From Amoebophrya sp. A120 (Eukaryota; Protista; Dinoflagellata), in assembly GCA_905178155.1 (NCBI GenBank), contig CAJINV010000011.1:705982-769981 (forward strand): 64,000 nucleotides of DNA, given 5' to 3'. The stretch's first letter is position 1. Each line of letters starts with the position of its first letter. The notes beneath the pieces were generated by a model. It had not been told where the DNA came from and ran no database searches. It saw only the letters and a list, made by a program, of their open reading frames with translations. Below are positions 12,201-61,865 of this stretch, one piece after another. The position numbers were made by a program, and so were the translations under genes.

Positions 12201-15200
12201 AACATTTGTAATGCGCAGCTTCATGAGAGGCATTTCCAATCGTGTTTTGGCATTTGTAATGCTGTAAACAGGATGAGAAAACGACTTTCTCATGCGGCTT
12301 TCCTTGCCAACCAGCACTACACTGCAGAGTGGGACTTGTCATGCACAGCTCCCAAAACTTGGAGATATGTGTTGCCAGATTCCCAGCTTGACTATGTGGT
12401 GGGGACGTTTTTGCTTAGGATAACGTGATTACCGACTTCATCTACATGCACTTTATGATCAACCCGGAGGTGGACGGGCGGCCGCCCACCAAATGTAACC
12501 TGATTCTCCCCGGGGCGGTGAGCATGGTTGAGTACGTGGTCTTGAACCACCCGCTCTGGCGGGTCGGGATGTGCCAACACTGGCAATGCGGAATGAGCCA
12601 CAGGTACTTGTTTTTACCCTGTCATCGTGGGCCTACATGCTAGAGCAGGTGATTTTCATACTTCACGGTTAGATGTGGTCCTCGTGTATCTATGGATAGA
12701 ACCTCTGCCTGCGTGTGATGTGATCATCATGCTAATAGGCGAAGAAAATGAATTTGCTTGCAGCGCAAACCATTAGTCATGTTGAAACAACTAGGTACGA
12801 CATGGGCACGGGTGGGCCGCTTCTTTGGCAGAAGACGTTTGCGGGGCGGGAGATCAACAGTTTAAACATCGAGTCCGCGCGGATGTCCAAGGACTACGTC
12901 TGCCTAGTGCACGGCTCCTTCTCGGAAGCCTGTGCGCGCGGTTGCATCACCTTCCCGCTGGACCAGTTGGCGGGCCGCGCTCTGCGCGTGACGAAGGGGG
13001 AAAACGGGAAAAAGGTGTGCCAGCTGCTGGACGAGATCAAACAGCTCCCCGGCGTGTCGAAAGACCGTACCGCGTACCCCTTTTACTGTTTCCAGAACAT
13101 GCAGGAAACCGCAGCGGTCCGCACCAAGGAAGACTACATCTGTTTGAAGTTTTGGATGATATGCATTGCACAAGCAAATCGTACTTAGTAAAAATTGCAT
13201 TACAAATAAAAAAATTGCATTAAAAATTGGCCCAGCATGACGAATTGAATTTGTAATGCGGATTTACCGTAAGAACTAGATTTGTAATGCGCGTCACTGC
13301 AAGTGCGATACTTTTGCAATGCATAGATGAAGAAACGCGGCGATTCGTCCATGGGTGAATACAATTCCGTGACGCACTACGAGGTGATTCAGCAGTTCGA
13401 GTACAAAAACCGGTATTACTCCCTGGTTCACTGCCGCATTCTTACCGGGCGCACCCACCAGATTCGCGCGCACATGCGGGCCATCGGCCACCCGCTCGTC
13501 CACGACCGGTGCTACGCCCTGCGCGGGGAGCAGGAGCGGCGCGGACCGCTCGCGGCGACCAACGGCATATGGTGTGTAAAAACGTTCCCAACTATGTACC
13601 CAGAGACAATAGGAGGATTTTGCAACACGACAAATCCAGAAGTTTTGGGAGCCTTCACACATGACAAGTTTCCATCTGTAGTTTAGTGTAGTGCGTCGGC
13701 CTAGCAAGGACAGCCGTGCATCACAAAGCCATCTGCTTATCCTGTTTAGAGAATTTGAAATTCCAAAACAGGACTGAGAAGGCCTCCTATCGGGATGCGC
13801 ATTCTTGCATATGTTCCTCTAGTAGATGCAAATCTGCATGACAACTCTGGGCGGGACTTGGGGATGTCTTTACACAGGATACGGCATCCGGAAAGCGGAA
13901 TTTGAGATGATGGACGTGAATCCGACGGGGGAAATCCACCTGTACAAGTACCGCAACAGTTTCTTGTCTATCGTAAGGAAAAACTCCACCGCCCCATATC
14001 GAAAAGAAAATTTGTGATGCTGATTTGTGGTCACAGATCAGCTTTGTCTTGCGTGCAAGGCAAACGGCACCCATGTGGCTCATTGTGCATCGAATCTGTC
14101 ATGCGTTGTCGCCTATGTCAGACTTGTTTCTGATGCTCAGGTGCTAGCCGGATCCGGATCCGTGCCCAAATTTGCCTAGCATATGCCGGCAAGCTCTTGC
14201 TGCAATACAAAGCGCATTTGTGTACACAAATCCAGCAACACAAATTGTCTTTTGCATATGGGGAGGGGGCTTTTTTCACTTTGATATTGTCCGGCACCTC
14301 CCGGTTCCAGTCGATCGAGTCCGAACCGCCCCAGAACTTCCGGGTCTTGCTCTCGAAGCTCAACCCTTTAACCCGGTTCGACTACCGAAGGATCGAGCAC
14401 TACGTGGAAAATCACTCGGAGAACTATGGCTTGCTCAGATGTTACAATCTCAAATCGGTTACCATAGAATCTGAAATTTGTCTTGCATAAACAGCACGAG
14501 TACCATACAGAGCCTTAGGCTTTTCGCAATAGAAATTTCGCCAGATAATTTTCATGAGCTTTGAAGCTCCGAAACTTGTCATGCGCGCTCCTGTGAGAGC
14601 AGGCCAGATGTTGCGCATTTTGCATCACAAATTCTAGATTCCATTGCAACGTTTATCAATTGAGATCGTAACACCTGAGCGGGTTATAAGAACCTTCCGC
14701 TCCTGGGCCGCGATCCGGAGAACATGCAACACCCGGACAGACGGTACTTATAGTGATGAACGTTGGTGGTCATGGTTTCATGTTCCTTAATATCAACATC
14801 GAAGTCCTCTGTTTCTGCAAAGCAATATAATCTTCAAAAGTACATTCATATACTAGGGAAAGCAGTCCGGCCCCTGGCCAGTATAGTTAAAGCAAAAAGT
14901 TACAGACTGAAGGCCGCGGAATTCGTGCGGCTAGCTAGAAAAACCGCGCGCTGTCGTTCGTTCGAAAAATAAAAAACTGCGCGCCAAGATTTTCGTCCAC
15001 ACGCTAAGTCAAAAAGTGCCGTCGGTGTCGTCCAACCGCGCTTCGGCGCCCAGCCCCATCCAAACGTTAAACCAGGGGCCCATCGGGAACGGGCCCCCAT
15101 CGGGTCGTGGCGCCCCCGCCTGGCCCGCGGCCGGTCCCTGCCGCCTGCCGGCCCGCCCGACCCGCGGCCGCCGCTCCCCCGCCCGCCATTCCCCTCCCCC

Positions 15201-18200
15201 GCCAGCTGCTGGCCCCTGTCGCCTGCCTGGCCGGCCCGCGGCCGCAGGGGGGGGGGCGCGGCCCCCCCCACTCCCCGCCCCCGGCAGCTGCCGCTCCCGG
15301 CCGCCTGCCTGCGTGCCCGCGGCGCCCGGCCCCCGGCCGCCGAGGAGGGGGCGCGGCCCCCGCCAGCTGCCGCTCCCTTCCGGCTGCGTGCCTGCCTGCC
15401 CGGCCGCAGGGGGGGGGCGCGGCCCCCCCCATTCCCCGCCCCCGCCCAGGGATCCGGAGAACATGCAACACCCGGACAGACGGTACTTATAGTGATAAAC
15501 GCTGGAGAGTTCACATGGTTTGTTGTTCCTCAGTATCGACATCGAAGTCTGTTTTTGCAAATCAACTACTTACAGAAGAGTTGTGAGAGCAGGCTGCCAG
15601 ATGTTGACTTTCAACCTTCTTACTTATGAAAACCACATTCGTTATCTTCATACCACCGTCCACAATATCCCCAGGTACTTTCTGAGCCTCGACAGGAGGA
15701 GAAGACTATCACACAGAAAAGAGCCGGCAGGTCACACTTGTAATGCAAAAATAAATACACAAAAAAATCTGTATTGCGTATCCCAAACAGCATGCTATGG
15801 GGCCGCCCATGAGAGATTCTTCTGTGTATTCATTTTTGCATTACAAATGTGCCCTGCCAGCTTTTTTCTCTGGGATAAAGACGTCGGTGCGGCTACTCTT
15901 CCAAGTACTTCGGCTTGCCAGAGGTTTTGCCCCCCGACGTGGAAATAAATGTTCCGTTGCAAGATGAGCAACAGCAACAAGGGAACAAATTTTTATCCGC
16001 CGGTGCGCCGAAGATCAAAAAGCAATCGCTGATGAAATCTATGCAAGAAAAAAACTGTTTAAGTGTGAATCTGTGATGCAGGAAATGAAAAATAGTTACA
16101 CTTGTCATGCTGGAAGCGCGTCATGGGCTACTATTCTACGCGTTTCCACGTACTAGCAGCTCATGACAGGTTTTCCCTGTAATGCAAAACGAATTTGTGA
16201 CGCTGCTCTTCCTACAAACTTACACTTACACAGTTTTTTTCCTGGATAAAATCCACGATGGGAGTACTAGCCGAAGCTTCTACCGGGGCTCCACCCACCT
16301 CCACCGGCATGATCGGGTCAGAAGTAGCGACGAAGGTTGCAGAACAGGACGAGAAGAACGTCACTGGTGTTGTCGAGTTTTCATGCAAGAACGAGAAGGC
16401 GATGCAACTAAATCAAGGCAAGAGCAACCCACTTTGCCTGCTCCCGGCGCACGAAGTGCTTGGGAAGGAGGAAGATCATCCGATCTTACAAGTACAGGAT
16501 CCGCGGGGCGGACCGAACGAGCCAGCGAAGAGAAGGAGAGTGGAAGGGCAGACGAACAAAGGCAGGACCACAGACGAGGCAGCGAGTCCACCCGCCTCTA
16601 CTTTGAAGGTGCCGGTGCTTCCGCCGCCGGCACCAGCGCGGAAGAGGAAAGAAGCGCATTTGCAACGGGATAATAGACAAGGCATTAAACAAGAAGCTGA
16701 GTCCACCAATCTACTTGCACCTCCACACGACGTTGTACTAAAAGAAGCACCGTGTAGTACAAAGGAAAATCGAGGGGAGAAAGAACTTGTGCTGCGGGCA
16801 GAGCGCCGTCCTCGACCTGTTGTGCAGGAGAACAAAACTACCGGAGTAGAAGTTGACAAGATGAAGTATCCTCAGAGCGACGACGAGGAAGATCTCCGCA
16901 GTAGTAGAGCTGCCTCCGTCTCGTCTTCGCGCCGATCATCGCCACGCCGCCCACTGGTTCATCGCAATGGTTCCAAGAACTACAGTCCCCGCGAGGAGCA
17001 GGACGCCGGAAGTGAGGGCGGTGCGAAGAAGGACGAAGAGAGGGTGTCGTCGACAGGGAAGAAGATGGTGGCGGGAATAACGCAGGATCGGGATGATCAT
17101 GATCCAGTGTTGAAGCAAACGAAGAAGTTTCGCTTGCCAGTCATTGGCTTGTTGGATACGGATGTTGGCCAAGTACAACACGATAAACAGGATGTTCGGA
17201 ACAAGAGAAGCAAGGAGCGACCGGTATTTGTGAACAAGAGCACGAAAAGTCCAGAGCGCGGCCGGGACGTCGAGAATCTTCACACTACCACCACGATGAG
17301 CAAGTTGTCTCCAGCTGCTGTGGCTGTTTCCTTGTCCGAAAAGCAAGAGGAGGAAGTCCAAGTCGTGCACCAAGATGTTGAACTCCGACCGGCTACAAGA
17401 ACTTCTTCCCTGGTCGAACAAAATAAGATGAAAGACGCCGACGGAGCACAAACTCCGGGAAGCGGTGACTACAGAAGTGAAAGGGTTGGTTCGGAATTGT
17501 CCCGGGGAGGTTTTCGTCCGGATGAAGAACAAATGGGCGACCGAGATGATAATCGGGGACGTTCGAAGGTGCGAACAAATTCGAAGGTGCGTGGGCACCA
17601 TTCGAAGGAACGAGCTGCTTTTCCAACTTACAAGGACCACAGCCGGGAGAAGATGCGGCGTGAAGAGAGTCGCAAGCGGGTGGTGGTTCAAGACGAGGTA
17701 AAAGAAGTACGGAGGCAGCCATCGAAAGTTCGGGATGACCGGGAGAAGCCGCGGCAGCACGACGGCAATGTTGATAAACAGGATCTACCTGTTGTTCCTA
17801 GAGAACCACGACCGGAATTAAAACGGGATGGAAACAAGAAGCGCGAGTCGAACATGAATTCCGGCAATGATCTTCGTGCCCCCGGGCGAAGAAGTGCCAG
17901 TCTTTCCCGCGGAAGCCAGAAGAGGTCAAAATCGCGGTCTATTCCGCGCCCGAGGTCCTCGCCGTCCATTCCCCGCAAGAGGTCGAGGTCGCGGTCCATT
18001 CCGCGCCCAAGATCGCCGTCCATTCCCCGGCCTGGCGGGTTTCGTGCGACCGGCCGGGAACCGTCGAAGGTGCGCGCGCCGTCGCAGGCGCGACAAGGCG
18101 TGCATCTCGGGGGAGAAGAGAACACAAAAAGAGCACTGCAAAATGTCAAAACCCCAACAAAAAGCTGCTCTCCACCCCGCCTCAGATTGCGGCTGGACAA

Positions 18201-21200
18201 CAGGAAGTCCTCCTCCCACCATGGAGGGCATGATCAGCGCGAGACAAATAAGTACAACACCGCCACAGATGTTGTTGACCGGAGTAGGGGTTCTTCCCGC
18301 GACAGGCGGTCGTTCGGGCACTCGGACCGGAACAAAGACCATTCCTTCCGGGGAAAGCCAAAGCGAAAAGACTCACGGTCACGCTCACCCGGCGAAGACC
18401 TACCGCCGGCAATCGGCACGCGGAAAAATCGTTTTTCCACCGGACGCAACAAGGATCGTAAAAGGTCGTCGTCCAGGTCGCGACGGAGCGGAGGTGAGCA
18501 GAAAAAAACAAGCATATGACACTGCACAACTCGTCCCACTCCCCCTTTTTTGCATAGTAAAAGTAATGCAAAATAATCCGAAAAAATCCTATGGTTGCGT
18601 AGGCGTTGTGGCACGGTTTGCAATATACAAATCTCGAAAGAAGTAGCCCAAACAGTACTACGCTGCTTCGGCGCATCAACTTGTCATGCACGGGCTGCAC
18701 AACTTGAGCTGGTGTCTGTATTGCTGTCCATCTTCCGACGACACAAATGAGAGGGTTTGGGGGAGTAGTCGTTCACTCTCATAAAGCACCAGCGGCAGAC
18801 ACAACGCGCGCAGGAGCGGTGACGGCGATAGGAGACACCTCGACGGGCCGCTGGTTGGTATGATGAGGAAATGCGGCGCAAATGAGGACTACAACAACTT
18901 CCGTAGAGGGAACAGCCTTGCCCGGGGCACCGCGGCGAACAGCGTGCCGCTCGGTACTAAGTGGAATTTTCTGGGAATTTGGAAAATTGAAAAAAATTCT
19001 TCCCCGGACGAGGTCGAAGGATTGCAGGCCCAGGTTTTGGCGGTGGTGGCGCGACGGACTATCATTTTCTTACCTCTACTCATGCGAATTTTCTTACCAA
19101 AACTCACAGGTACATGAACTTATCAAAACTCACAGGTACATGCATTCAAAAACATCAAAAACAAGCTGTCATCCAGGTACTAGCACTTACCTCGCGCCAT
19201 TGGTCCACTTCTTGGCGGATGTCCACACACACACACACACACACACAAATCACAAAAGTAGTAGCATTATGAAACAAATCCATCACAAACAAAGGTATCC
19301 AAATATAAAATCAGTCAGTGAAGGAAAACCTCTACGCTGCGGGTACCCCCGCCAGCGTACCCACTCAGCCGTGCCTACGCCAGGTAGTTCAAGACCAGGG
19401 CCTCGCTGTCGTTAGAGAAGATCTTCTGGACGAGGCACACGCGTTGCACCAGGTCTGGTGCAACACGGCCACAGGGCGGCAGGCATCTTGCTCCTGCGGA
19501 TCCGTTAGCTTTCCAGCAGTGGTACAGGGCGAAGGTGCTTATGTTTGGTAAGTTTAATAAGGAGGAACACCTGGTAATATGGTTTTTGATCAATTTGGAA
19601 TGTGTTTCGTGTGCACTATTTTCCTACGAATCCTAATCATCCCCTATGAGCCAAGAATGCTTGAATTCTGTGTGTGTGTGTGTGTGGACATCCGGACAGC
19701 AGGCATCGCCACCTCAGGTACCTGTTAATTTGAGTTATTCTATTTTTTGATGATGACGAGTGCTGGTGTCGTCGGGGCCGGGGCCGAGCAGCAAGCATCG
19801 TGCCGACGCAGGACATCTGGAAGCCCTTCCCGCAGCACGAACAGATCCGGCCGGAGGAGGTTGCCGTAGCTGGTGTTCATTAGCAGGGCCGCGAAGGAGG
19901 GGAGAATTTTTTTCAATTTTCCCAATTCCCAGAGAATTCCTCTTAGTACTTGCCCGGGGCACCGCGGCGAACAGCGTGCCACTCGGAACGAGGCCGGGCG
20001 TATCGAATGTAAAAATGTCTGGGTCTGGAAGGATGCAAGGTTTGTCATGCAGGTTTTCCATGACCCATGAGGTCTGGTATGTAGGACATAGCATGACAGA
20101 TTCTGCGGGACCTTTCTAATGCCTATCCTGCATGAGAAACTGCCTCGCGATTAGGTCAAAAGTGCACAACTTTTGGCAATCATGCAACACAGTTTTTTGC
20201 CTGATTCAGATTTAGCATGACACGTTGCATTCTTCCAGACCCAGACATTTTTACATTTGATAGGGCGGACGGGGGACCGATCTGATGGGTCGCAGCGTGA
20301 ACAACAGCGAGCAGTACCAGATAGCGCACGGTGCGGGCGGTGTTGTGCCGCTCTCTCAAGAAAATCATGTGAACACGACAAGACTGCCTGTTCCTCCACG
20401 GGGGGGCCAACACGTAGCGAAGTACCATCCCAGCCGGATTTCGGACTTGTGGACCCTGAAAGACCATCCGGAGGAGCACAAGCAGTTGTTTGCCTTCGAT
20501 TTTGCGAATTACCAATGCTGGAAAGTCGAAAAGGAGACGGAGCTCGGGTTGGAACCGGGATACCTGTTCGGCTTTGACGTGAAAGAGTTTGAGGCACTGG
20601 AGAAAAAACACGGGGGCGCAAGGAAAGTGGTGGACATGTGCGCGACGGAGGGGCTGATTAACGTGCGACTGATGGGCAAACTGGCCCTGGAAGAGGAGCA
20701 GGAGCAGAAGGAGCAGAAGGAGCAGCAGCAGCAGCAGCAAGCTGGAGTACCGCGGCCCAACATCCCTGTGAACAACAACCCCGAGGACCTGCTTCCACCG
20801 TCGAGACGGATGGCACGAAGCCAAATGCGCAAGGGCGGCAAGAATGACAAAGGCAGCGGACGTACTTACATTTTTGCTGATCGTATATAATGGTTTTATA
20901 GTAAGTGTGGGTTGTTATTTACTAAGAAGTGCCACCAATCATGTTTGTAGTTTTGCTCCCGTGCTGGCGCGTGGTCTACTACTTTTTCCTGCATTTTTTC
21001 TGGGCGAGAACTCGCAACCAGTTATTTTGTCGCGGTGAACAAACAATCTATCCACCCGCTGCTCGGTCTTAAGAGATGGTGTTTATGAAATTGATTTCAC
21101 CTCCTCCTCCTCCTTATGCCACACAGACATGATTATCCTAGTTTTATCCTTTGGGGGAAGAACAAAATCAAAAAAAAAATTTTTCGTTTCAAACATTCTC

Positions 21201-24145
21201 AGGGCGCCGCGGTTCTTCGTTTTATTCGCAATCTCGCGGTGGAGGTGGACCGTACTACCACCCCGGAAAGCTGCAAACAAAAGGCGGTGCTTCCTTCGCC
21301 GCCGCCGCGGCTCCGCAGTTCAAGGCTGCCCGAAGAAGGCCAAAAAACCTTCCTGAAGGCCTTCAGAAGGTTGAGATTCTTCTGAAGGTCCAAAAATCTT
21401 CTGAAGGTTTTTTGCAGCTTTTTTTGAAGCTTGCGAACTCAAAAAGTGTTTTCTTTGACTAAAGCGCCCTGTTTTTTCGATAAAGCGAATGAGTTGACAA
21501 TTGCCAACACTACACCTACAAAAAATTTCAAAAGCTTCCTCTGGATCTGGCGCCCGGGGAAGAGCCCGAAGCCCGCCCCTCGTTGCTGTTTTCGCCACGG
21601 GAAGAAGCCAAAGAAGCCCGATTCAGTAAGCAAAAAGCGAGGCGGCTTTGGCTTTTCGCTTCTTGCGGATCTGGTCCGTCCTCCGAGAAGAGGCCGACGC
21701 TGGCCGCTTATGTAAAGCAAAAAGGAAGAGGAGCGAGCGCCCTCTCTTGCCTTCTTCCGGACCTGGCCCTCGGAAACGTTGCCAAAGCTTTGTGGTTTTG
21801 TACGGCAGGAGGCGTCTCGGCCTTTTTAGCTTTTTCCGACCGACTCTGGCTCTTAAAGGAGAAGCCAGAAGGTGGTCGCTGCCGGCTTTTTCCACATGTA
21901 GTTCCTCCGAGAGAGGCCAAAGGCAGCCACTTTAGTGGAGTTTGGAGATTCTTGAAGGCCAAGCATCGCGCTTGTGCTTGGCGTAGATCTTCGCGCCCAA
22001 TCTAAGACCTACTCTGAAGGGTTTGCGTATTTTTTCCCACGCGGCGCACGCCGCGTGGATTGGTTCTTACTTACTAAGAAGTGCCAACATTTGTAGTTTT
22101 GCTCCCGTGGGCGGTGGTCTACTACTTTGTCCTGCATTTTTTCTACTCGCAACCAGGTATTTTGTCGCGGTGAACAATCTATCCACCCGCTGCTCGGTCT
22201 ACTGAAGAGATGGTGTTTATGAATTTGAATCCCTCCTCAGTATGCCGCACAGACATGATTGTCCTAGTTTCTTCATGTGGGCGTGGAAGAACAAAATCAA
22301 CATCAAAACAATTTTTTTTTTCGTTCCAAACATCCTCAGGGCGCCGCGGTTCCTCGTTTTATTCGCAATCTCGCAATGGAGGTGGACCGTACTACCATTC
22401 CGGAAAGCTGTATGGAGGCGTCAGGATTGAAATCGTCAAACTTGAAATAGTTTGTGATGCATAAACTGCATGACGCGAAATACGTGTGTTGCAGAGCAGG
22501 CAAGTGAGGCCGATTGTGGGCCTGTTTGGCGTTAGGGCTCGAGCTGCTAAAGTAGCATGAGAGAATCAGTCTTCTTTGCCTAAACAGCATGACAAACTGG
22601 ATTTAGGCATCGCCAAAATTTGTCATGCGCCACTTGGAAACTGGGCTCCAACTCCTGGCATCCATTTTATGCATGGCAAATCATTTCACCTTTGTCGATT
22701 TCAATCCTGACACATCTATAAGCTGCAAACAAAAGGCGTTGCTTCCTTCGCCGCCGCCGCGGCTCCGCAGTTCAAGGCCGCCCCGGTTCCCGGTCCCCCG
22801 AGCAAGCTGCCCGGACCACTGAGCAAGGGCGCGAACAAGTCGGGTAGTGCGGAAGGTTGTACAACTGGTAACACTTTCACCACTGGCACCAGTTCTTCCA
22901 GTAAAGGCGCTAGTAATATCAGTGGAGGTAGTTGCACGACCAAGAACACTAAAAACGCCACCATGATGAACATGAAGGGACGAGGCACATCAACGACGGC
23001 AGGACCACTGAGTACTAAAGGAGTACTGACTACTATCGCAAGAAAAAAGTGTTACAGTTACACATTGTCATGCAAGACTGTCAACAGAGACAACCTTTCT
23101 CATGCAGGAAATGCTTCCGAGCCTCTTTTCCTTCCTGTTTTCCCTTATGATCTTCGCATTACAAGTTTTCTCTGCCACACAGAGAAAATTTGTGATGCAG
23201 AAACTCCAACAAATGTGTAACTGTAACACTTTTTTCTCGTGATAACTACAGCAGGGGTCGTAGCGCCGTCCTCTTCGCGGGCAGCAGGTTCAGCTGCATA
23301 TCAAATGTAAAAATGTCTGGGTCTGGAAGAATGCAACTTGTGATGCTGCGTTTGGATTCCAAAAAAATCTGTATTGCATGAGTACCAAAGGGAATGCAAT
23401 TTTTGCTACGCTGAGAAGGCATTTGTCATGCGGAATAGGCATCAAGAAGCGTTCAAAAAATCTGTATTGCTAGGGTATGGATCACAGACATCATGGCTCA
23501 TGCAAAACGTGCACGACAAGTGTCAGAATCTTCCAGACCCAGACATTTTTACAGTTGATACTGCAGTGTCTGCTACAAATCCTCGTGCTGGCGGGGTAGT
23601 AGCTGCTGGGGTCGTAATATCAAAGAAAAAAAGTTCGTCACGATCACTCATGCGCATTTTTGCAATACAAAATTGTTTGTCATGTGTAAAAATGCATCAC
23701 AGCCAAAATACATTAGGGATTTCCCTAGTGTTTCTGCAATACAAGGAAAATTTGTGATGCTAAGAAAATTTGTAATGCAAAACCTGCAAGTTAGTGACTG
23801 TGACAAACTTTTTTCTCTCCATACGTAAGTACGAATTTGAATACAACCACAGGAGCCATGAGTAAAGCGAAATCCGTGATGCTTGCTTCCTCTTCTGCGA
23901 CGGGTGGTACAGCGGCGAACGGCATGGGTAATTTGGGGAACAACAACACAGTTGGCACTTCGACTGGTGCGGCGCCCCCGGCGGTTTCAACTACATCGGC
24001 GCCGCCAGTTCCTCCGAAGACCTCGCCGCCACTCTGTCTTCCAATGCAACACACGCAAAGCAAGGCCGGGGCCCCCGCGCCCCCGGCAGTGAGCAAGGCC
24101 TTCCCACCGCGGGGGAAATCCACGGCTCCGGCACCGCTGGTGTAG
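270..24145 (+). CDS. Giant (>=~5,500 aa, 5'-truncated) multi-exon protein with RluA-family pseudouridine synthase domain and RS/low-complexity C-terminus
   Basis: ORF 628-10851 joins in frame to downstream ORFs via GT-AG introns (10840-10985, 12604-12794, 14744-15674, 20862-22339) and removal of TIR elements. RluA motifs: [14 protein letters not shown] (~7582), [12 protein letters not shown] (~12599-12825, split by an intron), [37 protein letters not shown] (~13444-13506). Stop at 24143-24145. Continuity beyond ~14750 is less certain. Confidence 0.7.
321..623. mobile_element. Introner family C
   Basis: TAT...ATA ends, TIR aaaa(t)gcccccacccc, TSD ttgcg; removal gives SPFCVRKFF. Confidence 0.9.
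3067..3141 (+). repeat. 27-bp coding tandem repeat (KNDRGRSVF x~2.8)
   Basis: aaaaacgaccgcggaagatcggtcttc units starting at 3067, 3094 and 3121. Confidence 0.9.
12138..12422. mobile_element. Introner family B (diverged)
   Basis: TIR tatcctgagcaaaaacgtcccca, TSD acttg/acgtg; frame restored. Confidence 0.85.
12428..14424 (+). CDS. RluA/RluD-like pseudouridine synthase catalytic core (exons of the giant gene)
   Basis: HRxD motif with catalytic Asp, KxYxxLVxG and GRTHQIRxH...GHPL..D motifs assembled across one GT-AG intron and three TIR elements. Confidence 0.85.
13160..13325. mobile_element. Short introner (166 bp)
   Basis: TIR tatgcattgca/tgcaatgcata, TSD gatga; removal gives FWMKKRG. Confidence 0.85.
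13568..13881. mobile_element. Introner, family B-like
   Basis: Imperfect TIR tatggtgtgtaaaaacgttccca, TSD cggca; removal gives TNGIRK. Confidence 0.8.
13969..14286. mobile_element. Introner family D (C-related TIR)
   Basis: TAT...ATA ends, TSD ttgtc; termini related to 28606-28927 in opposite orientation. Confidence 0.85.
14425..14688. mobile_element. Introner (unique TIR)
   Basis: TIR gctcagatgttacaatctcaa / ttgagatcgtaacacctgagc, TSD agaac; frame restored. Confidence 0.85.
14822..15450. other. GC-rich foreign insert between duplicated exon-end/intron-start
   Basis: 14712-14821 is duplicated at 15451-15561 (first 46 bp identical); insert has long G/C runs. Confidence 0.8.
15707..15877. 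mobile_element. Short fold-back introner (171 bp)
   Basis: Almost wholly palindromic, TAT...ATA ends, TSD aagac. Confidence 0.85.
16040..16248. mobile_element. Introner (209 bp)
   Basis: TIR tatgcaagaaaaaaactgt, TSD aaatc; removal gives LMKSTMGVL. Confidence 0.85.
17923..18033 (+). repeat. Coding RS/RP repeat (SRSIPRPRS-like x4)
   Basis: Repeated tccattccgcgc / SIPR units. Confidence 0.75.
18515..18783. mobile_element. Introner (diverged TIR)
   Basis: tatga...tcata ends, TSD aagca; removal extends ORF 16258 in frame into ORF 18860. Confidence 0.75.
18955..19948. mobile_element. 994-bp TIR element with 38-bp target duplication
   Basis: 50-bp TIR (4 mismatches) tactaagtggaattttctggg...; flanking direct repeats 18917-18954 and 19949-19986 (1 mismatch); internal inverted (CA)n/(TG)n blocks. 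Confidence 0.9.
20001..20262. mobile_element. Introner family A
   Basis: TIR tatcgaatgtaaaaatgtctgggtctggaa, TSD gggcg; reverse orientation relative to the 56736 copy. Confidence 0.92.
21332..22054. other. Insert between ~420-bp duplicated intron-end/exon-start
   Basis: ~20907-21331 is duplicated at ~22055-22783, the second copy carrying an introner. Confidence 0.8.
22411..22720. mobile_element. Introner (unique TIR) with in-window empty site
   Basis: 30-bp TIR, TSD agctg; the paralogous copy at 21269-21273 has a single agctg. Confidence 0.92.
23034..23244. mobile_element. Introner (211 bp)
   Basis: 33-bp TIR ...agaaaaaagtgttacagttacacatt, TSD actac. Confidence 0.9.
23299..23560. mobile_element. 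Introner family A
   Basis: Family A TIR, TSD ctgca. Confidence 0.92.
23618..23823. mobile_element. Introner (206 bp)
   Basis: TIR ...agaaaaaaagtt.gtcac, TSD cgtaa. Confidence 0.85.
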
Positions 24146-34575: not shown

Positions 34576-34649
34576 AGCTAGAGGAAACGTTACGGATTGC
34601 AGTTTTTTAAAGCAGAAAGACGCGCGAACGTTTCTTACTGGGTATTTGG

Positions 34650-36419
34650 AAGTAGGAGGTGAATGTCAATGAGCCGAAGCACGACGTGCTTGGAGAGCAA
34701 CAAACTCAGCAGAAGGCACTGCTCAACTCATGTTGGTTTGTTTGTTGATGGTGTTCTCTACTCGTGTAAGTATTGCGGCATTTGTTTTCGTGAACAGCGC
34801 GGTCGCGACCGTCGTGGCTGCGTTTAGCTCCGTGACTTCATCTGTGAATGTCATTGACCCGGTTTCACTTGTGGAAGTCCGTGGCGGAGTCATGCGGCTG
34901 ACTTGTGGAGGTCCACGCCGTGCCGCGCAGTGAGCACGCGCGAGGTTGGCCCACATGCTGCGGCTGGGCCTCGTCGCGCCGTATCTGGCCGACAAAGTGG
35001 AGGGCCGGCATGAAGACCCGCAGCCGCGTGGCGCGTCAGGCGGCCACACAGCAGCGGAGCACGCAGAGAGTGAGAGCCAGCGAGGGCCTTTGGGCGGATT
35101 CAATGGGATCGGGCCCCTTGCGGGCAGTCGAGCCGAGGGCGGCGATTGTCGTCTACGATGCCGGACAGGGCCGATACCCTGACAGGCCGACACGCTGACA
35201 GGCCAGGCGGCGAAAGCCCCGCAGAGGAGCAACAAACGGCGCCGCCGTAGGGGTCAAAACTAACCCGATCTTCACGCGGTGGATAATCCGGGCGGCCTTC
35301 GTTCGTGGGTTTCGCCGCCGGCCTGCCCGCCCCGCGGCGCTTCGGTTTTTCTGTGGCGCGCGGGTGTTGGGCGGCGCTGCCCGTATGCCATGCGATGCGC
35401 CGACCCCTGGCCCAGCCGCGTGCATTGCGCGGGCCCAAAACTGGAAACGGTAGGCCCAGTGTAGTTGTTGGATGGGTAGCGCGGTGCTGTCGTGAGTGTG
35501 TCACTTCCTTCAAATAACAGAGCGAGGCGGGAAAATGGAAAACGAAAACACGGCCGGCAAAACGCGGCGCGCCTCATTGTGGCCATCTGCAACGCATCAG
35601 CGGCGGAATTGCCGGAGGGGCTGCAGCCCTGGCCGCGATGTCGCCAAGACATCTGATCTGGCGGACGCAAAACGGGCCAAGCGGGCCAAAAATTCGCGCA
35701 GTGCGCCCCCCAATAGCAGCGCCAGCAGCGCGTCTGCGTCCGTGGGGCCCTCCGGGCTTGTCACTGAGATCCTCGCGTCCCCAGTGAAGCAGCGCAAGAC
35801 CCCGGAACCGCCCCCCGTGGCTTGTGGGGCTCATGCGCCCCGCTTGTTCCGCCCTGGCGACTTCGGGGCCACGGCGCGCCGCTGCCGGGACCCCCTAGGT
35901 TCCCTTGGGGCTGCGGGTTGCGCCGCCCCCCCCCAGCGAGAGTTCTGGGCGAAGCTCAAGCCCCCGGAGCTTGCCGACGCGGCCGAGCTCGGCGAACAAC
36001 TCACCGCGTGGAGAACGTTGGGCGGCACCTGCGCAAGCTGATGAGGGAGCGCGGCGCGACAATTCGGAAATGGGCCCCCGACTGGATCCCGCGGGTGGGG
36101 TGGGCATGCCGCACGCGCTTGCCTGCCATGCCTCCGCCGTTGGCGTGCAACCAAGCACTCGCAGGCGTGGCCCTTCGGGGGGCTCCCTCCCTCGCGGCGG
36201 CCATCGGCCTGGCGCCGCCAACTGTTCTCTGCGCGCGGGCGAGACGCAGCCGGGCGCCGGCCGCGTGGTCGCGCGCCGCCCATTTCTTTGTAGATAGTGG
36301 ACGTGGCGCCCTGGCCTGGGCTGTGTGTCGCAGGTGTGTGGACGCACCAGTAGACCGGAGGCAGGAAGAGCCCGGGGCGCGCCCGCCGGTCCTCTTGGGT
36401 TGGTAGCTACCGACCCCGA
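34650..36419. other. GC-rich intergenic foreign insert
   Basis: Abrupt GC rise; flanks gtttcttactgggtattt (34630) and gtttcttaccgggccattt (36420). Confidence 0.6.
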
Positions 36420-37439
36420 GTTTCTTACCGGGCCATTTCGTTGGATTTCGTACGTACTTGAGAACGGCTTGCCGCTGTTTTTTTTCGGCGAATAGACTTG
36501 TTCCAGGGTGAGCAGACCTTTTGTGTGATAGATTTAATCTGAAGATCAGTTTTTGCTGAGCCGAGTTCCAGCAAAGGTTTTTTGTTTTACTCGCCGCTAT
36601 TGCACACTCATTTCCTTCGCGTGGTCTGTCAGTGGTGATTTTATGCATTTTTTTTTGCATCACTCAACAACATGCACATAAGATCATCAAGAGCGGACGA
36701 CCAGAAGAAAGATCAATCCATTCCTTCGCGTAGATGTTGCTCCGCACAGTAGGACCGCTTTAAGTTCGTACTTTGGTAGAAGAGTTTGCCACTTTGTACT
36801 TTTCCGTGCCGGTGATTAAGGTGATCGTCGATCTAGTCTGTTTACTGCTGGCACTTTCTTGTTCCCAAAATGTTTTGATGGAAGACAACATCCGATTTGA
36901 GGTTCATATGAAATTATTTCTCGAGAGCCAGTTCATAAAATATCAGCGAGGCCAAGTATTTATTCAAGGGTCCTGGGTTCTGTAAATGTTCAGTAGCCTT
37001 GCCTCTTCTCACTGAAGATTTTCGATCCACCTCATAATTTTTGATTCTTGCGCTTTTCATGATTTCCTCGACCAAAGTGAACTTGTCAAAACCATAGTTT
37101 CAGTACAGCTCTGTAGTGTAAGCTTGACACGCCAAAAGTATTGTTCTACGTAAATGCACTTGACGACGCAAGTTTTTGTTCCATTATTATCTTCGCGACC
37201 ACTTCAAAAAGACAATTTTTCATCTACAAACGACTGTAACTCTAAATCGATATTATCCACCCCGACGGCACGACGCGACGATCGCTTATCTGTTATTCCT
37301 ACACACTTCACGCCTTATAAATCTCTTTCTTGTAAGTACCTACAACTTTAATATCTCGTCCATGGTAAGTAGCGGTCGCGGGGTTTTTTATTTTTCCACT
37401 TGATTTACTTCTATTTTTACCAAATTATCTATCACGACG

Positions 37440-40400
37440 ATGTCGAACGAAGCGAGCAAAGTTTTCGTGGGTGGCCTGCCGTTGCAGGCAACCAAAGAGG
37501 AGCTGCAGTCCTATGCGGCAGAGTTCGGCGAAGTCAAGGACGCGGTATTATGATTTTTATTTACCATGCGAGCAGGTTGAAGATCGATGATCAAAATTTA
37601 GAACTACTCATTCGCCAGCACCTCGACCTCCTACTTCGAAAACGAAAAAATAAACTCACCCCCGCCTAGACCTACTCAATGAAAATACAAATCAGGTGAT
37701 CATGCTCGATAGGCTAACGAAGAACTCACGTGGCTTTGGTTTTGTCACCTTTGTGGAGGTGGAAGCGGCGCAGAGGTGCCTCGGCAAGACCGAGCCGCAC
37801 ATGCTGGCTGGCAAGCAAATCGAAATCAAGCCAACAGAATCTGACAAAGACGAGAACCCAGAATGGAAATTGTTCATCGGAGGGCTGGAAGAATCAGTAT
37901 AGTGCAGTGCTTATCATTTGTGCCTTCAAAAAATAAAATGCATGATTGCAAATACTACAAATATCGTCTCGGCGTCTAGGTCCGGGACAAAGTCGGAACT
38001 TGTAATGCTTGGCTTGCATTCCTGCCAGTAGAAGCAGTACTTTGTGTATGTAAAAGTCGCGACCCACAACTCCAAATTTCGCAGGTGAAGGACGAGGACT
38101 TGAGGTCAAAATTTTCCGAATTTGGCGAAGTGAATTCTGCTGTGGTGATGATGCGCGACGGAGTCAGCAGAAAGTTTGGATTCGTCAGCTACAAAACCGA
38201 GCCCGAATTTGCGGCGGCCATCATATGTCCGCACGTGGAGATAAATGGCAAGAAGATCGACGTGAAGGTGGCACAAATGCCCCGGGGACAGCACTTCCCC
38301 ACGGAAGGCAAGCTCTACATTGGCGACCTCGGCGAAAGCATGACCAACGACATGCTCAAGGAATACTTCTCCAGTCTCGGCGAAGTGCTCAGCGCAACGG
38401 TGATGATGGACCACGGCACCCAGAAAAGCAGTATAGAAATTTTTACTTCATCTCTTATTTGGACGCCGGGCACGACGGCGAGTTGGTGTGTTTTAGAATT
38501 TGAGAAGTATTTGTTCTATTAGGTCCTGGTGGAAGAAATTGAGTAAAGTTGTACTATGATCGTCCCGCCGTGATGAAGAAATAAGGGATATCCTATAGAA
38601 ACGAACCAAGTTGTTCTTCTCAGTGTCACAAGAAAATGTGGGAATGGGCCACAAAATTAATAAATGCAATGTGGTACTGACAGAAATTTCAATATATCTG
38701 TTGAAAGACGAAGATCAAAACCTAAAACAGAGGGGTTTGGTTTCGTGCAGTTTTCAGAGCCGAAGCAAGCCTACGATGTGATGCGCAAGCCACACATGAT
38801 TAACGGCACACAAGTGGTAGTCAAGTCATCAGCCAACAACGCACCGGTGGGGAAGCAAGGGAAAGGGTACAGAATTGTTTTCGAATTTTCATACCACGTA
38901 CGGTAATCCTGATAAGGATAGCCATACCGTTCAGAAGTGAGAATGATCCGAATGATGACTCCGCAAGGAGATAACAGGACGACGCGTGTTTTTATCGCAC
39001 ACTCTTCTTCTGCGTCCGCCGAATTTTTATAAAAAACCCATCATCTACCGAAAAAAAATCCCCAAAACACAGGAAAGACGGCAAGGACGGTAAGGGTGGG
39101 TACGGCAAGGGAGGGTACGGTGGTTACTACCCACCAGGCCAGGGCAAGGGCGGGCACCAGGACTGCACGAACAAGATCTTCGTGGGCGGGTTGCCACCCT
39201 CGGCCAACAACGAGACCATGAACCAATTTTTTTCGCAGTATGGACCAGTAAAGGACTGCATCGCGATGTACGACAGAGAGACAAGTATAGTTTTATAGTC
39301 TATAGAATGATACGAACTTGACTCAAAGGCTGTAGAGGAAAGTTCTGAGACCCTTAAACAGCATTAGAGATTGCGGCTCAACCTGGAGCAAACCTGGGGC
39401 AAACCCCTAGGGCTTTTCAAACTGGTTCTTTTCATATTGGCTAATACGCACGGCAGAGACTCAAAAGATAAAGGTCGAGCCGTAGGAAACGACCAAAAAC
39501 CACGACAAACGAGACGTCTGTGCACACACTGAATCACCACGCTACTACGGCAAAAGCTGAAGCTTTTCTGGAGCGCGAGCTCTAGAACTTTTCCAGTGTG
39601 TCTCCGCTTTTTTTCTTAAAGTGCATGCTACTGCGAAAATATTTCCGACAAATTCTACGGCTTAAGCTGTAGCCAAGCCGTGGATGCTTGGTGGCGGTGC
39701 AGCACGGTGGCCAGCACTTTCATCCCCTGCTTGGCCACCAGATGCTTGGCCGCCATGTTGGCCGTGCCTGCGAAAGCTCCTGGTGGCACCTCTTTCCCCT
39801 GCGTGCTGGCGCCTGCCTCTTAGCCCTGGCAGCTTTTCTTACCTACCCTGTGCGCTAGGTCTTGCCCCTCGCGGTACATCTTGTCCCCCGCAATACATCT
39901 TGCCCCTCACAGTACATCCCGCCCCTCGCAATAGATCCTGCCCCTCGCAGTACATCTTGCCCTTCGCAGTACATCTTGCCCCTCACAGTACACCTTGCCC
40001 CTTGCAGTACATCTTGCCCCTCGCCGTGCATCTTGCCCCTCGCAGCACATCTTGCCCCTGCGCATACGTCTTGCCCCTGGTAGGACTTCTTGCTCCTTGT
40101 AGTACTAGCGCCTCTTGTCCATCGCAATACAATCTCGCCTCGGCAGGCGCATGCACATCCTGCGCCGGATAGAACTTGCTTCTTGCCCCTGCTGGTAGGG
40201 CCTCTTGCTCCTGCTCCTGATAGCACATATAGGGTCCGCCTTCCAATACCCCCAGCGCCCTGCCGGCAAAGACCTAGCCGCCCCGCCCCGCCCTCGGGGA
40301 GCGAGCTAGCGAACAACCTCCACCGCCCCCAGGTTTCCCGCCGTGTGACTGCCACCCCGGCAGGCCCCGGGCCGCCCCTTGTTGCCCTCGCGGCGCATGC

Positions 40401-41704
40401 GTGCCCGCAGGTGCGCCCCCCGCTCCTCCAACGCCCGCGCGGGAACGTCCACGGGCCCTTTTTTTCCCCGCGCCAGCCATTTTTCTTCTTCGGTGTGCCA
40501 AGGCGGTGAAGGAAGGGTCCGCGCGCCAACTATAAACAGACACGCAGGCGCAAGCACAAGTAGGCAGCTGCCAAAGTCGCGGCCGTAAATTAATATCCAC
40601 TCGGGGCATGTTGCCGCTATCTTGCGGCGACTATGCCGAGGCCCGCTGCTGTCCGCGCAGTATGGACCAGTAAAGGACTGCATCGCGATGTACGACAGAG
40701 AGACAAGTATATTGCTAACTTATCGTCGCGAAGAAAAAAGTTTTTTTCACCGTAAAATCAAACTTGTGATGCATAAAATGGAAGAACACACGACACATTA
40801 GTGTTTGTCTTGCTAGTTGTACACATACAAAAAAAATTCATCCCTAAAATGAACTATCACAGCAAAACCACGAGGCTTCGGGTATGTAACGTTCGCAAGC
40901 GAGCAGGCTATGTATGCGTGCCTGCAGGACAAGGAGCGGCACTACATTGACGGCAAATACATCGACTGCAAGAGAGCGACGAATCAGCACGACCGGTCCG
41001 GTGGTGGCTATGGCGCGGCGCAGTACGGCCAGGCAGCAATGGGCGCGTATGGAGCAGGTATTGGAAGTGACAACTTTTATTTGCCTTACATCTTCTCCAG
41101 CGGATGGGTAATTCGAATTTTTGGGAAGCGGCAAAAACATTGTGTACTTTACCCATGATGATGATGATGATAGAACAAGCGAGCGAAAAGAGCTGCAAAA
41201 AATTATAAAGACAATCCTTCTGGAATTTGAATTTCAACGACTGTTGAAACAATAAACCACAAATAACAACATCAGCTTATGGCTACGGTGCGACCCCCGC
41301 CGCGTATGGGTACGCAGCACCCGCTTACCCGGCCTACGATATGACCGCCATGGACCCAAACTATGCAGCAGGTATTTATAATGTTCTCGACCCCACTGGG
41401 CAACAAGCTGCCGCAACTGCAGGTAGAAAGCACGACTGCTAAATTTCATGTGTTATTTCCTGTTTGATTTTTTCTGGAAGTCGAAGTAGCAAGCACATGA
41501 AGGCATAAAGATCAAAATCTTGCATCATTCATGTCTATAAAACAAACATCCAAAACAGCCGCCTATCAGCAGTACTACGCAGCTGCGGCTGCCGCCCCCC
41601 AGGCTCAGTACGCACAGTACTACGCCGCGGCCGCTGATCCCAACGCAGCAGCTTACGCGCAGCAGTACGCTGCCCAGGCCGCGGCGCGGCCAGGACCCTA
41701 CTAG
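37440..41704 (+). CDS. Four-RRM RNA-binding protein (hnRNP A1/Musashi/DAZAP1-like) with Ala/Tyr/Gln-rich tail
   Basis: RNP2 motifs KVFVGGL, KLFIGGL, KLYIGDL, KIFVGGL. RNP1 motifs RGFGFVTF, KFGFVSY, GFGFVQF, RGFGYVTF. GT-AG introns 37545-37695, 37897-38084, 38431-38730, 38867-39072, 39285-40862, 41058-41275 and one ending at 41558. Confidence 0.9.
39290..40655. other. 1,366-bp foreign insert between exact 56-bp direct repeats
   Basis: 39234-39289 is identical to 40656-40711; insert contains a minisatellite and a GC-rich right half. Confidence 0.85.
39861..40107. repeat. 19-bp minisatellite, ~13 units
   Basis: Consensus cttgcccctcgcagtacat with no spacers, degenerating at the 3' end. Confidence 0.9.
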
Positions 41705-58720: not shown

Positions 58721-59209
58721 GCAAAAGTTGCAGTTTGTGTATTGATGAAATGAAACAGAATGTCCATAGTCGTGATTGTTCACTTGTTGTGCTACTCATG
58801 TATCGAAAAAATTTAGTGAGAAACCGCGAGAACTAGTACCGTGTTGTCAACACTCTCTTGTCCCTACTTTTTGTTTGCCCAAGATTTATTTCACCATTTA
58901 CCGCGTCCATTAACTTGGAGTAATGCTATTCTTGAACTTGTTTAACCGCTTATTCTCTTTGAATTTGGTAATAACCTTACAACAGACAAAATTTTTTACG
59001 CGTTCGAGCGTCAGCTTACAAAAGAGCACAAGAAGATGAAATCTGTTTCAGACTTTCCGCGTTTCAAGGTCAAACTTTATCGGTTTCTGTTAGATGAGCT
59101 GGGTGGAAGAGAATACAGCTGGCATTGTACAAGTAGCACAGTTGTTGACGAAGATTGATCCAGAAGGCGTCGACCACGAACTCTTTAGACAACAGTGTTC
59201 GGAGATAGA

Positions 59210-61232
59210 CTGGATCAGCACCGACATCGGCGGGGCATATGACAGTGCTCAGGTCGGAAAATTGTTTAGAGGCGTGCCGCGAAATGGGGGGCGCCCCAGC
59301 ATGTGGGCGCTTCGTCCGCGCCTGGATGGTAAGCCGCGCAAGCCCGGCGCGTTTTGGCGGGAATGCCTTCACAGGCAGCGCCTGCATCATTGGGCTAGCG
59401 CGGGGCGGAATTGCCTCGCTCGCTGCGTGGGGCCTGTTGGTTGATTCCTTGCCCAAGCTAGCGCCTCCGGGGAAGAAGTTGCGGCTGCGGGCAGGCGGGG
59501 GCCGCGCGGGTGGGCTTCTACGCAGACGACAGGGCGCCTATGATGGCCGCAACCAACCGCAAGAAGCGGGCCGGGACACTTCGCAAAAGAGCGACGGCAC
59601 TGCGCGAAGAACGGGAGGCGCTCGGCCTCGGCCCCGACAGGGCCGTGCCAAGGGCCCCAGCCTCGTCGGCGCCCATGCCCGTGAAGCGGAGGCTCGAGCA
59701 GGCAGGACGCCGGCAAGCCCCCTGTGTGAGTGTCTGATTGGGTGGGCCGAAACATTGCCCACGCGCGCCAGCCGTCGGAGAGCAGCGCCGCCCCGTTTGG
59801 GCCGTTGGTTTGCCAAGACTGAAGGCGCGAGGCTATTTGTTGCGATGCAGCCTGCCTGCCCCCCACTGCGCCGGCCGCTGCGCCCATGCCCCAGAGGGCC
59901 CCTACGTACAGGCACGGCAAGCGGCCACGCATCGGTTGCGGCGCGGGCAAGAAAGCCGGGCGGGGCCCCTTCCCTCGGGGGCGGGGCGCGCGCGCCGTGT
60001 GTTTCGGCGTGGCCCCGCATCGCTGCCGGCGCCAGGGGGGCCGGGCGGGGGCGCGGGCTAGATTCCTCGCCCCGGGACAGCCAGGGGGCCAGGCAGCAGA
60101 CCGGCGAGAGAATCCAAACCCCCAAGATGGCACTGGTGCAGATCTATGATGGTGGAAGTGCCGGGCGTCGGGGCCCGTAGGCGCGCGGGGGAGGGCGGGC
60201 GCAAACGGCACGCGGCCCCCTGGTTGCCTGTAGATCGTCCGGAACCGTGGAAGACAGGCCGAGCCGTGTCGCAGCGAGTCTGTTAGTTTTTGACTTTTTG
60301 ACTTTTTGCGCCATGTTGTTTGGCTTTTTCCCTTTCCCACAGGCCCCGGAATTTTTAGCGCATGGCCCCTAGCCTAACGGCCCCCATCTGTAGCGGGTTG
60401 GGGGAAATAAAACGCGCGCCGGGGCCTCCGAGATTCATTGCGCCGGCACCGCTGCGCATCCGCGGCATGTATGAGGAAGAGGCGGGCCCCCTGTTTTGCC
60501 TTGGGGCGTGCTGCCCGCACCACCGAGCTTGGCGCTTTGCATGGTTTCGCGCCTCTTTGTTTGCGCAGCAGCTTCGGCGATGCTGGAGCGTCCGGCCAAC
60601 AAGGGCCACGGCGGGGGGGGGCTTCGCGGGGGATGCGAAAATAAAAGCAGGGCGCGCCGAACGCTCGAGATGCAAAAAAGCAGATGAAGGCGCCCGCCCC
60701 TACCTTTTGAGCAAGTGCCAGGAAGCCGCGGAGACGGCGCGCGCAGCTTCAGGAGATTCGGGGCGCGGGGCGCGGGTTTCTCGGCAGCGGCGGCCGGCCC
60801 TTCGGGGGCGCTACGTAATAGCCCCCCCCGGCGGGCGCGGGCCCCCGGGGCCGTTACTATAGGGGGCCGGTCGGGTGGGGCCGTTGGCTTTTCAGAAAGA
60901 ACCAAGCCAGGGGGCGGACTGGCCCGCCACCATAGCATGCGAGGGAGGGGAGGCGCGTGGGAGAGCGGCTGCCGCCGCGCCAGGCATAGGCCCGCCGGCC
61001 AGTTGGACCCAAAGGAGAAACCACTGGGGCTGTCGGGAAAACAATGACGCCGCTTTGTTGGGAAGGTCCGGGAACAGCGTCGCGGGCGAGCAAGCGCGAC
61101 AACCAGTCGCGGCCGGAAAAAGGTTGGCCGATATGTGGCCCCAAGTGGATAGATATGGCAGCGTGGCTGCGTGTGTCGTAGGCACAGACCAAATGACATT
61201 CCGCTACGGTGTGTTCAGCTCGATATTGGTGT
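59210..61232. other. ~2-kb GC-rich intergenic foreign insert
   Basis: Imperfect ~40-bp direct repeat cgtcgacc..cacgaact..tagacaacagtgttc at ~59168-59209 and ~61233-61278. Confidence 0.7.
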
Positions 61233-61865
61233 CGTCGACCTCCACGAACTGCTATAGACAACAGTGTTCCAAAATAGAAGCACTCCTGAGCCGCACAGCG
61301 CGGTTTCTTCTGTGGATCTACGTTTTTGGAAGCTTTCAAGCACGATCTCCTTCGCAACTCTTTTTTGGATCTAGTGATCGCTTTTTGAATTTGAAGATCG
61401 CGTTCAGGTTACGGATAAAATCTGGCACATCTTCTTCGTGTTGCGCTGAAAAAAAAGATCGAGTCGAACCATAATACCCTGCGACCTTGTGGCCGCAAAA
61501 CATAAAAAAAAGCCATGGAGATGCATCCAGGAACCGACCCACCTCACCGTAGCGGGGTCGAATTCTACGGCGGGCGAGCTTATGGTAGTTCTAGTTCCAG
61601 GTCATCACCAATGGGATTTGACGACGAGGAAGACATCACGAGAAGACGACAGCAGAGTGGCTGTCTTTCGCACAGTTACACAGGCGCAACAACTTGGAAG
61701 TCTCGCTTCAGCTGTAGAAGCTGGCGAAACAAAGGCCAAGAAGCTGTGAATGTGGTTACTGACAGACGACACCGTTTACGCACAAGCGCTGTTCCTTCTC
61801 GGAGACGTCGCAGGTTGGATTCGCTCTGGTGCAATGCAGGAGCACAGCCCGGCTTTGGGGTCACG

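Follow-up and report, generated by a model that had tools for sequence, protein, structure and literature searches.

We analyzed a 64-kb stretch of the genome of the parasite Amoebophrya (G000:C11:705982-769981; hereafter, the window), which carries five inserts, ins1 to ins5. We propose, with a probability of roughly 0.55, that the parasite's own non-autonomous transposons have been inserted here by a non-canonical, one-ended route. As judged by comparison with the rest of the genome, ins1, ins2 and ins4 are native, non-coding, GC-rich repeats present in many copies, and each is a half element with one natural and one truncated end. At ins4, the insert lies in a gene and is removed from the transcript through a duplicated splice site.

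A sequence-only reading of this DNA had seen foreign inserts in all five, bracketed by long duplications and possibly taken from the chromatin of the host dinoflagellate. The GC-rich islands lie where that reading had placed them (GC of 0.79 at 15001-15500, 0.68 at 35001-36500, 0.65 at 40001-40500 and 0.66-0.72 at 59501-61000), against a window background of about 50%. Likewise, the five inserts share no similarity with one another and show neither terminal inverted repeats (the best end-to-end inverted match is only 6-13 nt), nor poly(A) or simple-repeat tails, nor a coding signal. The open reading frames in ins3, ins5 and the family of ins4 are only Arg/Ala/Gly/Pro-rich frames overlapping on both strands, none of them credible. 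Scanned against Rfam, the window and three element loci gave no family, and thus neither a hammerhead nor another ribozyme that would hint at Penelope-like elements or retrozymes. The borders moved slightly, to 14848-15446 for ins1 and 21332-22069 for ins2.

The foreign origin could not be maintained for ins1, ins2 and ins4. Searching the genome (115.5 Mb, 401 contigs) gave 24, 24 and 23 matches, respectively, on many contigs and at 66-100% identity; ins3 gave a match of about 115 bp only, and ins5 matched only itself. Rather than host chromatin, each of the three multicopy inserts is a truncated parasite repeat with one end exactly at the natural terminus of its family. That reading had named fragments of parasite long interspersed nuclear element (LINE) or long terminal repeat (LTR) families as the finding that would overturn it; in part the inserts are indeed fragments of parasite repeat families, but these are neither LINE nor LTR. 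We refer to the families as F1 (ins1), F2 (ins2), F4 (ins4) and F5, an extra family read at loci L065, L067 and L068; other loci also carry L-numbers.

Half elements between long direct repeats

Flanking repeats were assessed by local alignment scored against 100 shuffles, and a self-comparison of the window listed its internal repeats. The long flanking repeats claimed for all five inserts stand far above shuffles at ins1, ins2, ins4 and ins5, and are at chance level at ins3. The two copies of the duplication are 100% identical at ins4, 86% at ins1, 83-97% at ins2, 83% at ins5 and 97% around a 994-bp element described below.

At ins1, the alignment pairs 14712-14825 with 15451-15565 (101 of 118 columns identical, 85.6%; score 149 against a shuffle maximum of 26). 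Eight other loci begin at the same base as ins1, which marks the left terminus of F1. The insert (GC 0.74) is 100% identical over 325-327 bp to two other F1 copies, and other copies extend beyond 15446, where ins1 stops, in continuing GC-rich tandem repeats. With a diverged repeat yet relatives identical over this stretch, ins1 may itself be a source copy.

F2 is about 1.06 kb at full length; its right end is common to the copies and its left ends are variable. The ins2 repeat aligns in two parts, 20910-21273 against 22062-22410 (313 of 378 identical) and 21268-21331 against 22720-22783 (97%). Of the two copies of the ins2 duplication, only the right one is interrupted by a 309-bp element (22411-22719), which has TAT...ATA ends and is flanked by a 5-bp AGCTG duplication. 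Because the left copy (21268-21273) represents its empty site, this small element was inserted after the ins2 duplication had formed.

ins4 is a half element spliced out of an RRM gene

The repeat around ins4 is perfect (39234-39289 and 40656-40711, 56/56 identical). Other loci align with ins4 from its first base and continue past its last, so ins4 is the left-end half of F4. All F4 copies contain a run of 19-bp tandem repeats (CTTGCCCCTCGCAGTACAT-like) that varies in number; in ins4 there are about fifteen, at 39827-40111.

Read data were compared over 34800-40799, with a DNA run that is probably from the sample that was assembled and that contains 98% of sampled words from the examined stretch. 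A transcript-like contig (depth 141), spliced at four GT..AG introns, departs from the DNA at 39284 and resumes at 40863, which places the intron at 39285-40862. Thus, ins4 is excised from the transcript, and of the two copies of the donor site it is the upstream one that is used. The frame joined across this intron (exon ends joined by script) reads IFVGGL...RGFGYVTF, the two motifs of an RNA recognition motif (RRM). The sequence-only reading had proposed that three intragenic inserts duplicate an exon-intron boundary and can therefore be spliced out; splicing-out is demonstrated for ins4, and for ins4 only. Despite the perfect repeat, even the closest relatives reach only 81-90% identity with ins4. 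Since the depth shows no near-identical second copy either, the source copy of ins4 is probably missing from the data of this strain.

Could an assembly or gap-filling artefact have duplicated the flanks around misplaced sequence? The assembly combines nanopore and short reads (PMC7789003), and the repeats of ins1, ins2 and ins5 are imperfect with small gaps. Arguing against this, a single 5366-bp short-read contig (depth 43) spans 34800-39263 with 0 differences and crosses the right border of ins3, and a 70-bp contig (depth 45) crosses the left junction of ins4. The contig pieces listed for ins4 cover its left junction and its interior, the latter at depth 43-54, that of a single copy. At both of the crossed junctions the depth is single-copy. 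Together with a transcript that splices across ins4, and the recurrence of this architecture at many loci, where the junctions coincide with ends specific to each family, this leaves an artefact scarcely credible.

Long duplications accompany incomplete copies

The sequence-only reading expected the phenomenon to recur genome-wide, and it does: the same families occur at other loci flanked by duplications of 26-149 bp (Table 1). Long duplications accompany incomplete or damaged copies, and full-length copies with intact ends lack them. Complete copies without any flanking repeat were read at three loci for F4 (L035-L037), two for F2 (L022, L023) and two for F5 (L067, L068); a 2-bp TA duplication is possible in these. 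The most telling comparison is within F5, where L065 is the same element as the intact, repeat-free L067 and L068 minus 3 and 8 nt at its ends, and is flanked by a 42-bp repeat.

Either terminus may be the intact one. Left halves are ins4, L039, L040, L042, L043, L044 and L017; right halves are ins2, L021, L063 and L066. Two loci hold stacked inserts. L040 (G000:C5:1205000-1208800, 1438-3297) has three copies of a 45-bp target segment around two different inserts, and at L066 (G000:C5:4693684-4696714, 350-2913) the copies of the target segment are 100% identical. Either two insertions struck the same target at each locus, or a single complex event came back to it.

Table 1. Inserts, their flanking duplications and related elements. 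Positions are those of the window; for other loci the length of the repeat is given.
Feature	Position	Strand	Description
ins1, left duplication copy	14712..14841		14712-14825 aligned; weaker similarity on to ~14841
ins1, insert	14848..15446	+	left-end half of F1; starts ..ATACTAGGGAAAGCAGTCCGG; ends within GC-rich tandem repeats
ins1, right duplication copy	15451..15580		GTAAGT donor-like site on the minus strand, ~15573-15578
Sixth event, left duplication copy	18916..18954		18917-18954 against 19949-19986, 97%
Sixth event, complete 994-bp element	18955..19948		51-bp terminal inverted repeats, 92%, TACTAAG...CTTAGTA
Sixth event, right duplication copy	19948..19986		same alignment
ins2, left duplication copy	20910..21331		~420 bp; also empty site of the small element at 22411
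ins2, insert	21332..22069	+	right-end half of F2; left truncated; ends in hairpin CCACGCGGCG-CA-CGCCGCGTGG plus ~12 nt
ins2, right duplication copy	22070..22783		split by later 309-bp TAT...ATA element, 22411-22719
ins3	34850..36419		non-coding GC-rich island, nearly unique, no supported flanking repeat
ins4, left duplication copy	39234..39289	+	final 51 nt of RRM exon plus donor GTATA; exon end 39284
ins4, insert	39290..40655	+	left-end half of F4; right end cut off; 19-bp tandem repeats inside
ins4, right duplication copy	40656..40711	+	now intronic
Enlarged intron	39285..40862	+	1578 nt: ins4, second repeat copy and original 156-nt intron
ins5, left duplication copy	59168..59209		local alignment
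ins5, insert	59210..61232		2.0 kb, non-coding, 67% GC, no second copy in genome
ins5, right duplication copy	61233..61278		local alignment
~260-bp element copies in the window	20001-20262, 23299-23560, 31225-31491, 32108-32377, 33671-33921, 46262-46828, 47884-48136, 49513-49774		inverted-repeat element
F4-type left-end halves	L039; L040; L042; L043; L044		repeat of 70; 45; 44; 46; 26 bp
Right-end-only copies	L063; L066		repeat of 70 bp; 58-67 bp, three identical copies
Right-end fragment	L054		adjoined by a 149-bp repeat pair
F2 copies	L017; L021		left end only, 31-bp repeat; 136-bp right-end fragment, 15-bp repeat

These patterns bear on target-primed reverse transcription, by which the inserts would be 5'-truncated copies of an RNA resembling a short interspersed nuclear element (SINE), mobilized by a LINE that makes long duplications, like Dualen. 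Truncation at one end, long and variable duplications and microhomology at the truncated joint would all suit such a process, as would a hairpin tail (see below) of which 31 bp are 100% identical between families, reminiscent of the 3' tail of a LINE or SINE. Long LINE duplications are documented (PMC9977147), and non-LTR elements are reported for the genus (PMC7789003). Nevertheless, F4-type and F2 elements each occur with either end intact, and full-length copies exist without any duplication, so reverse transcription of one RNA does not fit. Nor does the 994-bp element, complete with both inverted-repeat ends, or the lack of poly(A) and simple-repeat tails; no reverse-transcriptase partner turned up, none having been sought. 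We therefore consider reverse transcription improbable.

Intact ends may also lie close to splice donors. In 5/12 events the intact-end junction is within 20 nt of a donor-like site (score of at least 4), compared with 16% of random window positions; for truncated-end junctions the same score gives 2/12. The score is a crude match to AG|GTRAGT, by which the proven donor of ins4 scores just 3, and the 12 events are those of the window, L017, L039-L044 and L063-L066. The clearest cases are ins4 (the proven donor), L039 (GTGAGT), L042 and ins1 (GTAAGT). This proximity is suggestive only, and might reflect target preference, selection or chance.

The families are laid out like non-autonomous Helitrons

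F1, F2, F4 and F5 are non-coding, 1-3 kb long and about 60% GC, and have no terminal inverted repeats. Full-length F4 measures 2.8-2.9 kb (for example, L036:724-3630) at a GC of 0.60. The termini are TAGTTTTATAG...GTGCAACATA for F4, AATAGAAGG...GGTTCTTATGT(AC) for F2 and TAGCCAAGAG...CCCCAAAT(A) for F5. The families carry a strong GC hairpin 11-12 nt from the right terminus, which folds at -18.7 kcal/mol (z -4.9) in F4 and at -12.6 kcal/mol (z -2.5) in F2; the left ends of these two families are no more structured than shuffled sequence. Searching the genome for the F4 hairpin in a 31-32-bp version gave 25 occurrences, against 0 in a reversed control, and several families have it in common. 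In most copies the flanks are consistent with a host T adjoining the left end and a host A adjoining the right one.

Canonical Helitrons begin with 5' TC, end with 3' CTRR and insert between host A|T or T|T in a fixed orientation. Apart from the TC and CTRR termini, the layout of our families is Helitron-like. The genome also encodes candidate enzymes. Open frames of 701-2028 amino acids contain seven Helitron_like_N matches, and one frame of 1565 amino acids combines Helitron_like_N with a PIF1 helicase domain. The latter lies in an apparently intact 6.1-kb Helitron at L069 (G000:C5:4562000-4571999, 2879-8967); further Rep-helicase loci are at C10:259181, C3:592213, C17:243808 and C3:5506720. 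A second copy of this element at C10:649433-655491 is 99% identical, which suggests recent activity. We rejected a link between L069 and the families: the only resemblance is a short ATAGA..TGTAAG match to the F2 left end, which was not counted.

A sixth event and small inverted-repeat elements

The window self-comparison revealed a sixth event, in which a 994-bp element lies between 39-bp direct repeats. This element belongs to a low-copy family; among the listed matches, other loci cover only its terminal stretches. Separately, nine copies of an introner-like inverted-repeat element of about 260 bp (TATCAAATGTAAAAATGTCTGGGTCTGGAAG ... its reverse complement) were seen. A second small inverted-repeat element (TATCCTGAGTAAAAACGTACCCAC...) occurs at 28977-29255, 30521-30799 and 30853-31135, two of the copies being 95% identical and 1.5 kb apart. 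The 279-bp repeat at 28977 and 30521 was considered as a target duplication and rejected, being two copies of this small element.

ins3 and ins5 are nearly unique

The best flanking repeat of ins3 is only 12/13 bp, with a score of 21, below the shuffle maximum of 27, and a wider comparison of the flanks was no better. Within ins3, 35932-36048 (117 bp) matches another native repeat at 85%, and the genome search places the match of about 115 bp at two loci only. The short-read depth of ins3 is that of its flanks. Transcript-like contigs at about 3x lie within it (34847-35535, 35916-36165), reflecting weak transcription or DNA carry-over. At ins5, 59168-59209 aligns with 61233-61278 at 38/46 identical positions (score 50 against a shuffle maximum of 28), and the whole-genome search found no other copy. 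The 83% identity of its repeat suggests that ins5 is an old event, and its family may have decayed.

In the case of ins5 and most of ins3, captured DNA from the host dinoflagellate or another foreign source has to be weighed. In its favor, a second copy of ins5 is absent from the genome, ins3 matches elsewhere over 117 bp only, and both are 66-67% GC, well apart from the background of the window. Native families are, however, equally GC-rich (F4 0.60, ins1 0.74). Codon periodicity is absent from both inserts, with period-3 power ratios of 6.5 for ins3 and 0.7 for ins5, where a transposase frame gives 220 and a host coding stretch gives 42. One exact 29-mer of ins5 had no match in a metagenome collection, which is a weak test. 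In addition, ins3 shares its depth with its flanks and a piece with a native repeat. Old events with decayed families would explain the unique look of both inserts, and fit the diverged repeat of ins5 and the lost repeat of ins3. Foreign capture is, in our view, very improbable even for these two.

A proposed one-ended route of insertion

At non-canonical insertions the target abuts one natural end of the element, in many cases after ..TA, and the other joint lies tens to hundreds of bases off. An internal end, broken or copied incompletely, forms this second joint at ins1, ins2 and ins4; in other cases it is a nibbled end or, for the 994-bp element, a second natural end. Our model suggests that a single natural end is joined to the target first, not in concert with the second joint. 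The latter would arise independently, tens to hundreds of bases away and on the opposite strand, and fill-in of the stagger would copy 26-420 bp of the target. The candidate enzyme would be an HUH Rep-helicase or another nickase, and we likewise infer the order of nicking, copying and joining. Where the duplicated stretch holds a donor site, the upstream copy would be used and the insert would leave with the old intron, as shown for ins4.

The competing account is pure repair capture, in which free extrachromosomal transposon DNA is ligated or template-switched into staggered breaks with no transposase acting at the target. The natural ends would then simply be the ends of free molecules, whether excised, rolling-circle or broken. 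The sequence-only reading had also thought of repair, and the junctions do have that look, with 0-5 nt of shared letters, filler or eroded ends. Junction microhomology of 1-5 nt, together with target sequence resembling the element end over 8-10 nt at ins2 and L039, speaks for capture, as does the fact that hairpin-ended and inverted-repeat-ended transposons share one signature. On the other side, most natural ends are base-exact and the junctions favor host T|A. Intact termini and the T|A pattern favor an enzyme-made first joint, whereas filler and eroded ends favor host repair of free element DNA. Repair capture also leaves the source of staggered breaks of 26-420 nt unexplained, and, the unassigned ins5 aside, no clearly non-transposon insert was found. 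We regard it as rather unlikely, though far from negligible.

Several points count against one-ended insertion by the parasite's own transposons. Filler of 3-14 nt stands at the intact end of L042, L044 and L017 and looks like host end-joining; the eroded ends of L065 likewise resemble end-joining and not clean enzyme transfer. Both observations are among those that argue for repair capture. F4, F2 and F5 do not carry the canonical 5' TC and 3' CTRR. The only Rep-helicase element read, L069, has ends unlike those of F1, F2 and F4 and no strong terminal hairpin; no autonomous partner with the termini of F1, F2, F4 or F5 emerged among the Rep-helicase elements examined, of which L069 is the only one. 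The 39-bp duplication around the inverted-repeat 994-bp element means that the route is not tied to one type of transposon, and a single transposase geometry is disfavored because such an element shows the same long duplication. By genome search and alignment, ins3 and ins5 match no family, and ins3 has no repeat. Finally, the sample is small, with about 14 insertion events read in total.

Discussion

One-ended insertion of native transposons, as we propose it, has both similarities to and differences from known systems. As in non-autonomous Helitrons, there are no inverted-repeat ends, full-length copies sit without duplication, a 3' GC hairpin lies 11-12 nt from the end, truncated or one-ended copies occur, and intact Rep-helicase genes are present in the same genome. 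Unlike Helitrons, the families lack TC and CTRR and their site looks like T|A, not A|T or T|T. Moreover, canonical Helitrons are not characterized by long flanking duplications, and a terminus-sharing autonomous partner is not among the elements read.

Replitrons are characterized by short direct repeats at both termini and a Y1 Rep transposase; by eye, no shared terminal hexamer is obvious in F2, F4 and F5. Unexplained target duplications of variable length are described for Replitron-1 and several Chlamydomonas Helitron families (PMC10288648). Replitron-1/N1 and the non-canonical Helitrons of Chlamydomonas reinhardtii are HUH-type copy-and-paste elements that resemble ours in variable duplications and extra terminal letters. 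The Chlamydomonas duplications are given as variable, one of them of 2 bp, and the right ends as 'fuzzy' (PMC10288648, PMC9977147). Here, in contrast, duplications are 26-420 bp, half elements dominate and truncation removes hundreds of bases.

Among LINEs, R9 of rotifers makes very long target duplications. Dualen elements in Chlamydomonas also leave very long ones (PMC9977147). Both share with our inserts variable long duplications around truncated copies and microhomology at the truncated joint. In our families, by contrast, the intact end can be either one, duplications are missing from full-length copies, and there is no tail repeat or link to a reverse transcriptase.

Introners and other transposon-made introns (PMC9860276), including those of Amoebophrya (PMC7789003), are likewise spliced out via a duplicated splice site. 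The Amoebophrya type, exemplified at 22411-22719, has TAT...ATA ends and a 5-bp duplication, which ins1 to ins5 do not. The inserts described here are 0.6-2 kb long and without splice sites of their own, and ride on a duplicated host donor and the old acceptor.

More broadly, and only tentatively, since we think it somewhat less probable than its negation, Amoebophrya may possess an undescribed pathway of DNA insertion. Single ends of Helitron-like or inverted-repeat transposons would be joined to the target, with the second joint about 40-70 bp (up to 420) away and perhaps a preference for sites just inside introns. Duplication of the donor site would render the insert harmless at once, enlarging or creating introns.

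The claim of host-chromatin uptake is removed for three of the five inserts. If our proposal is true, it describes an integration mode not previously described for Helitron-like or inverted-repeat elements, with half elements and duplications 10x the usual length, and would connect to the unexplained variable duplications of the Chlamydomonas HUH transposons. It would also provide a concrete source of intron enlargement and of duplicated exon ends. Kilobase-sized intragenic inserts would be tolerated in a compact parasite genome because the duplicated donor lets the old acceptor remove them whole.

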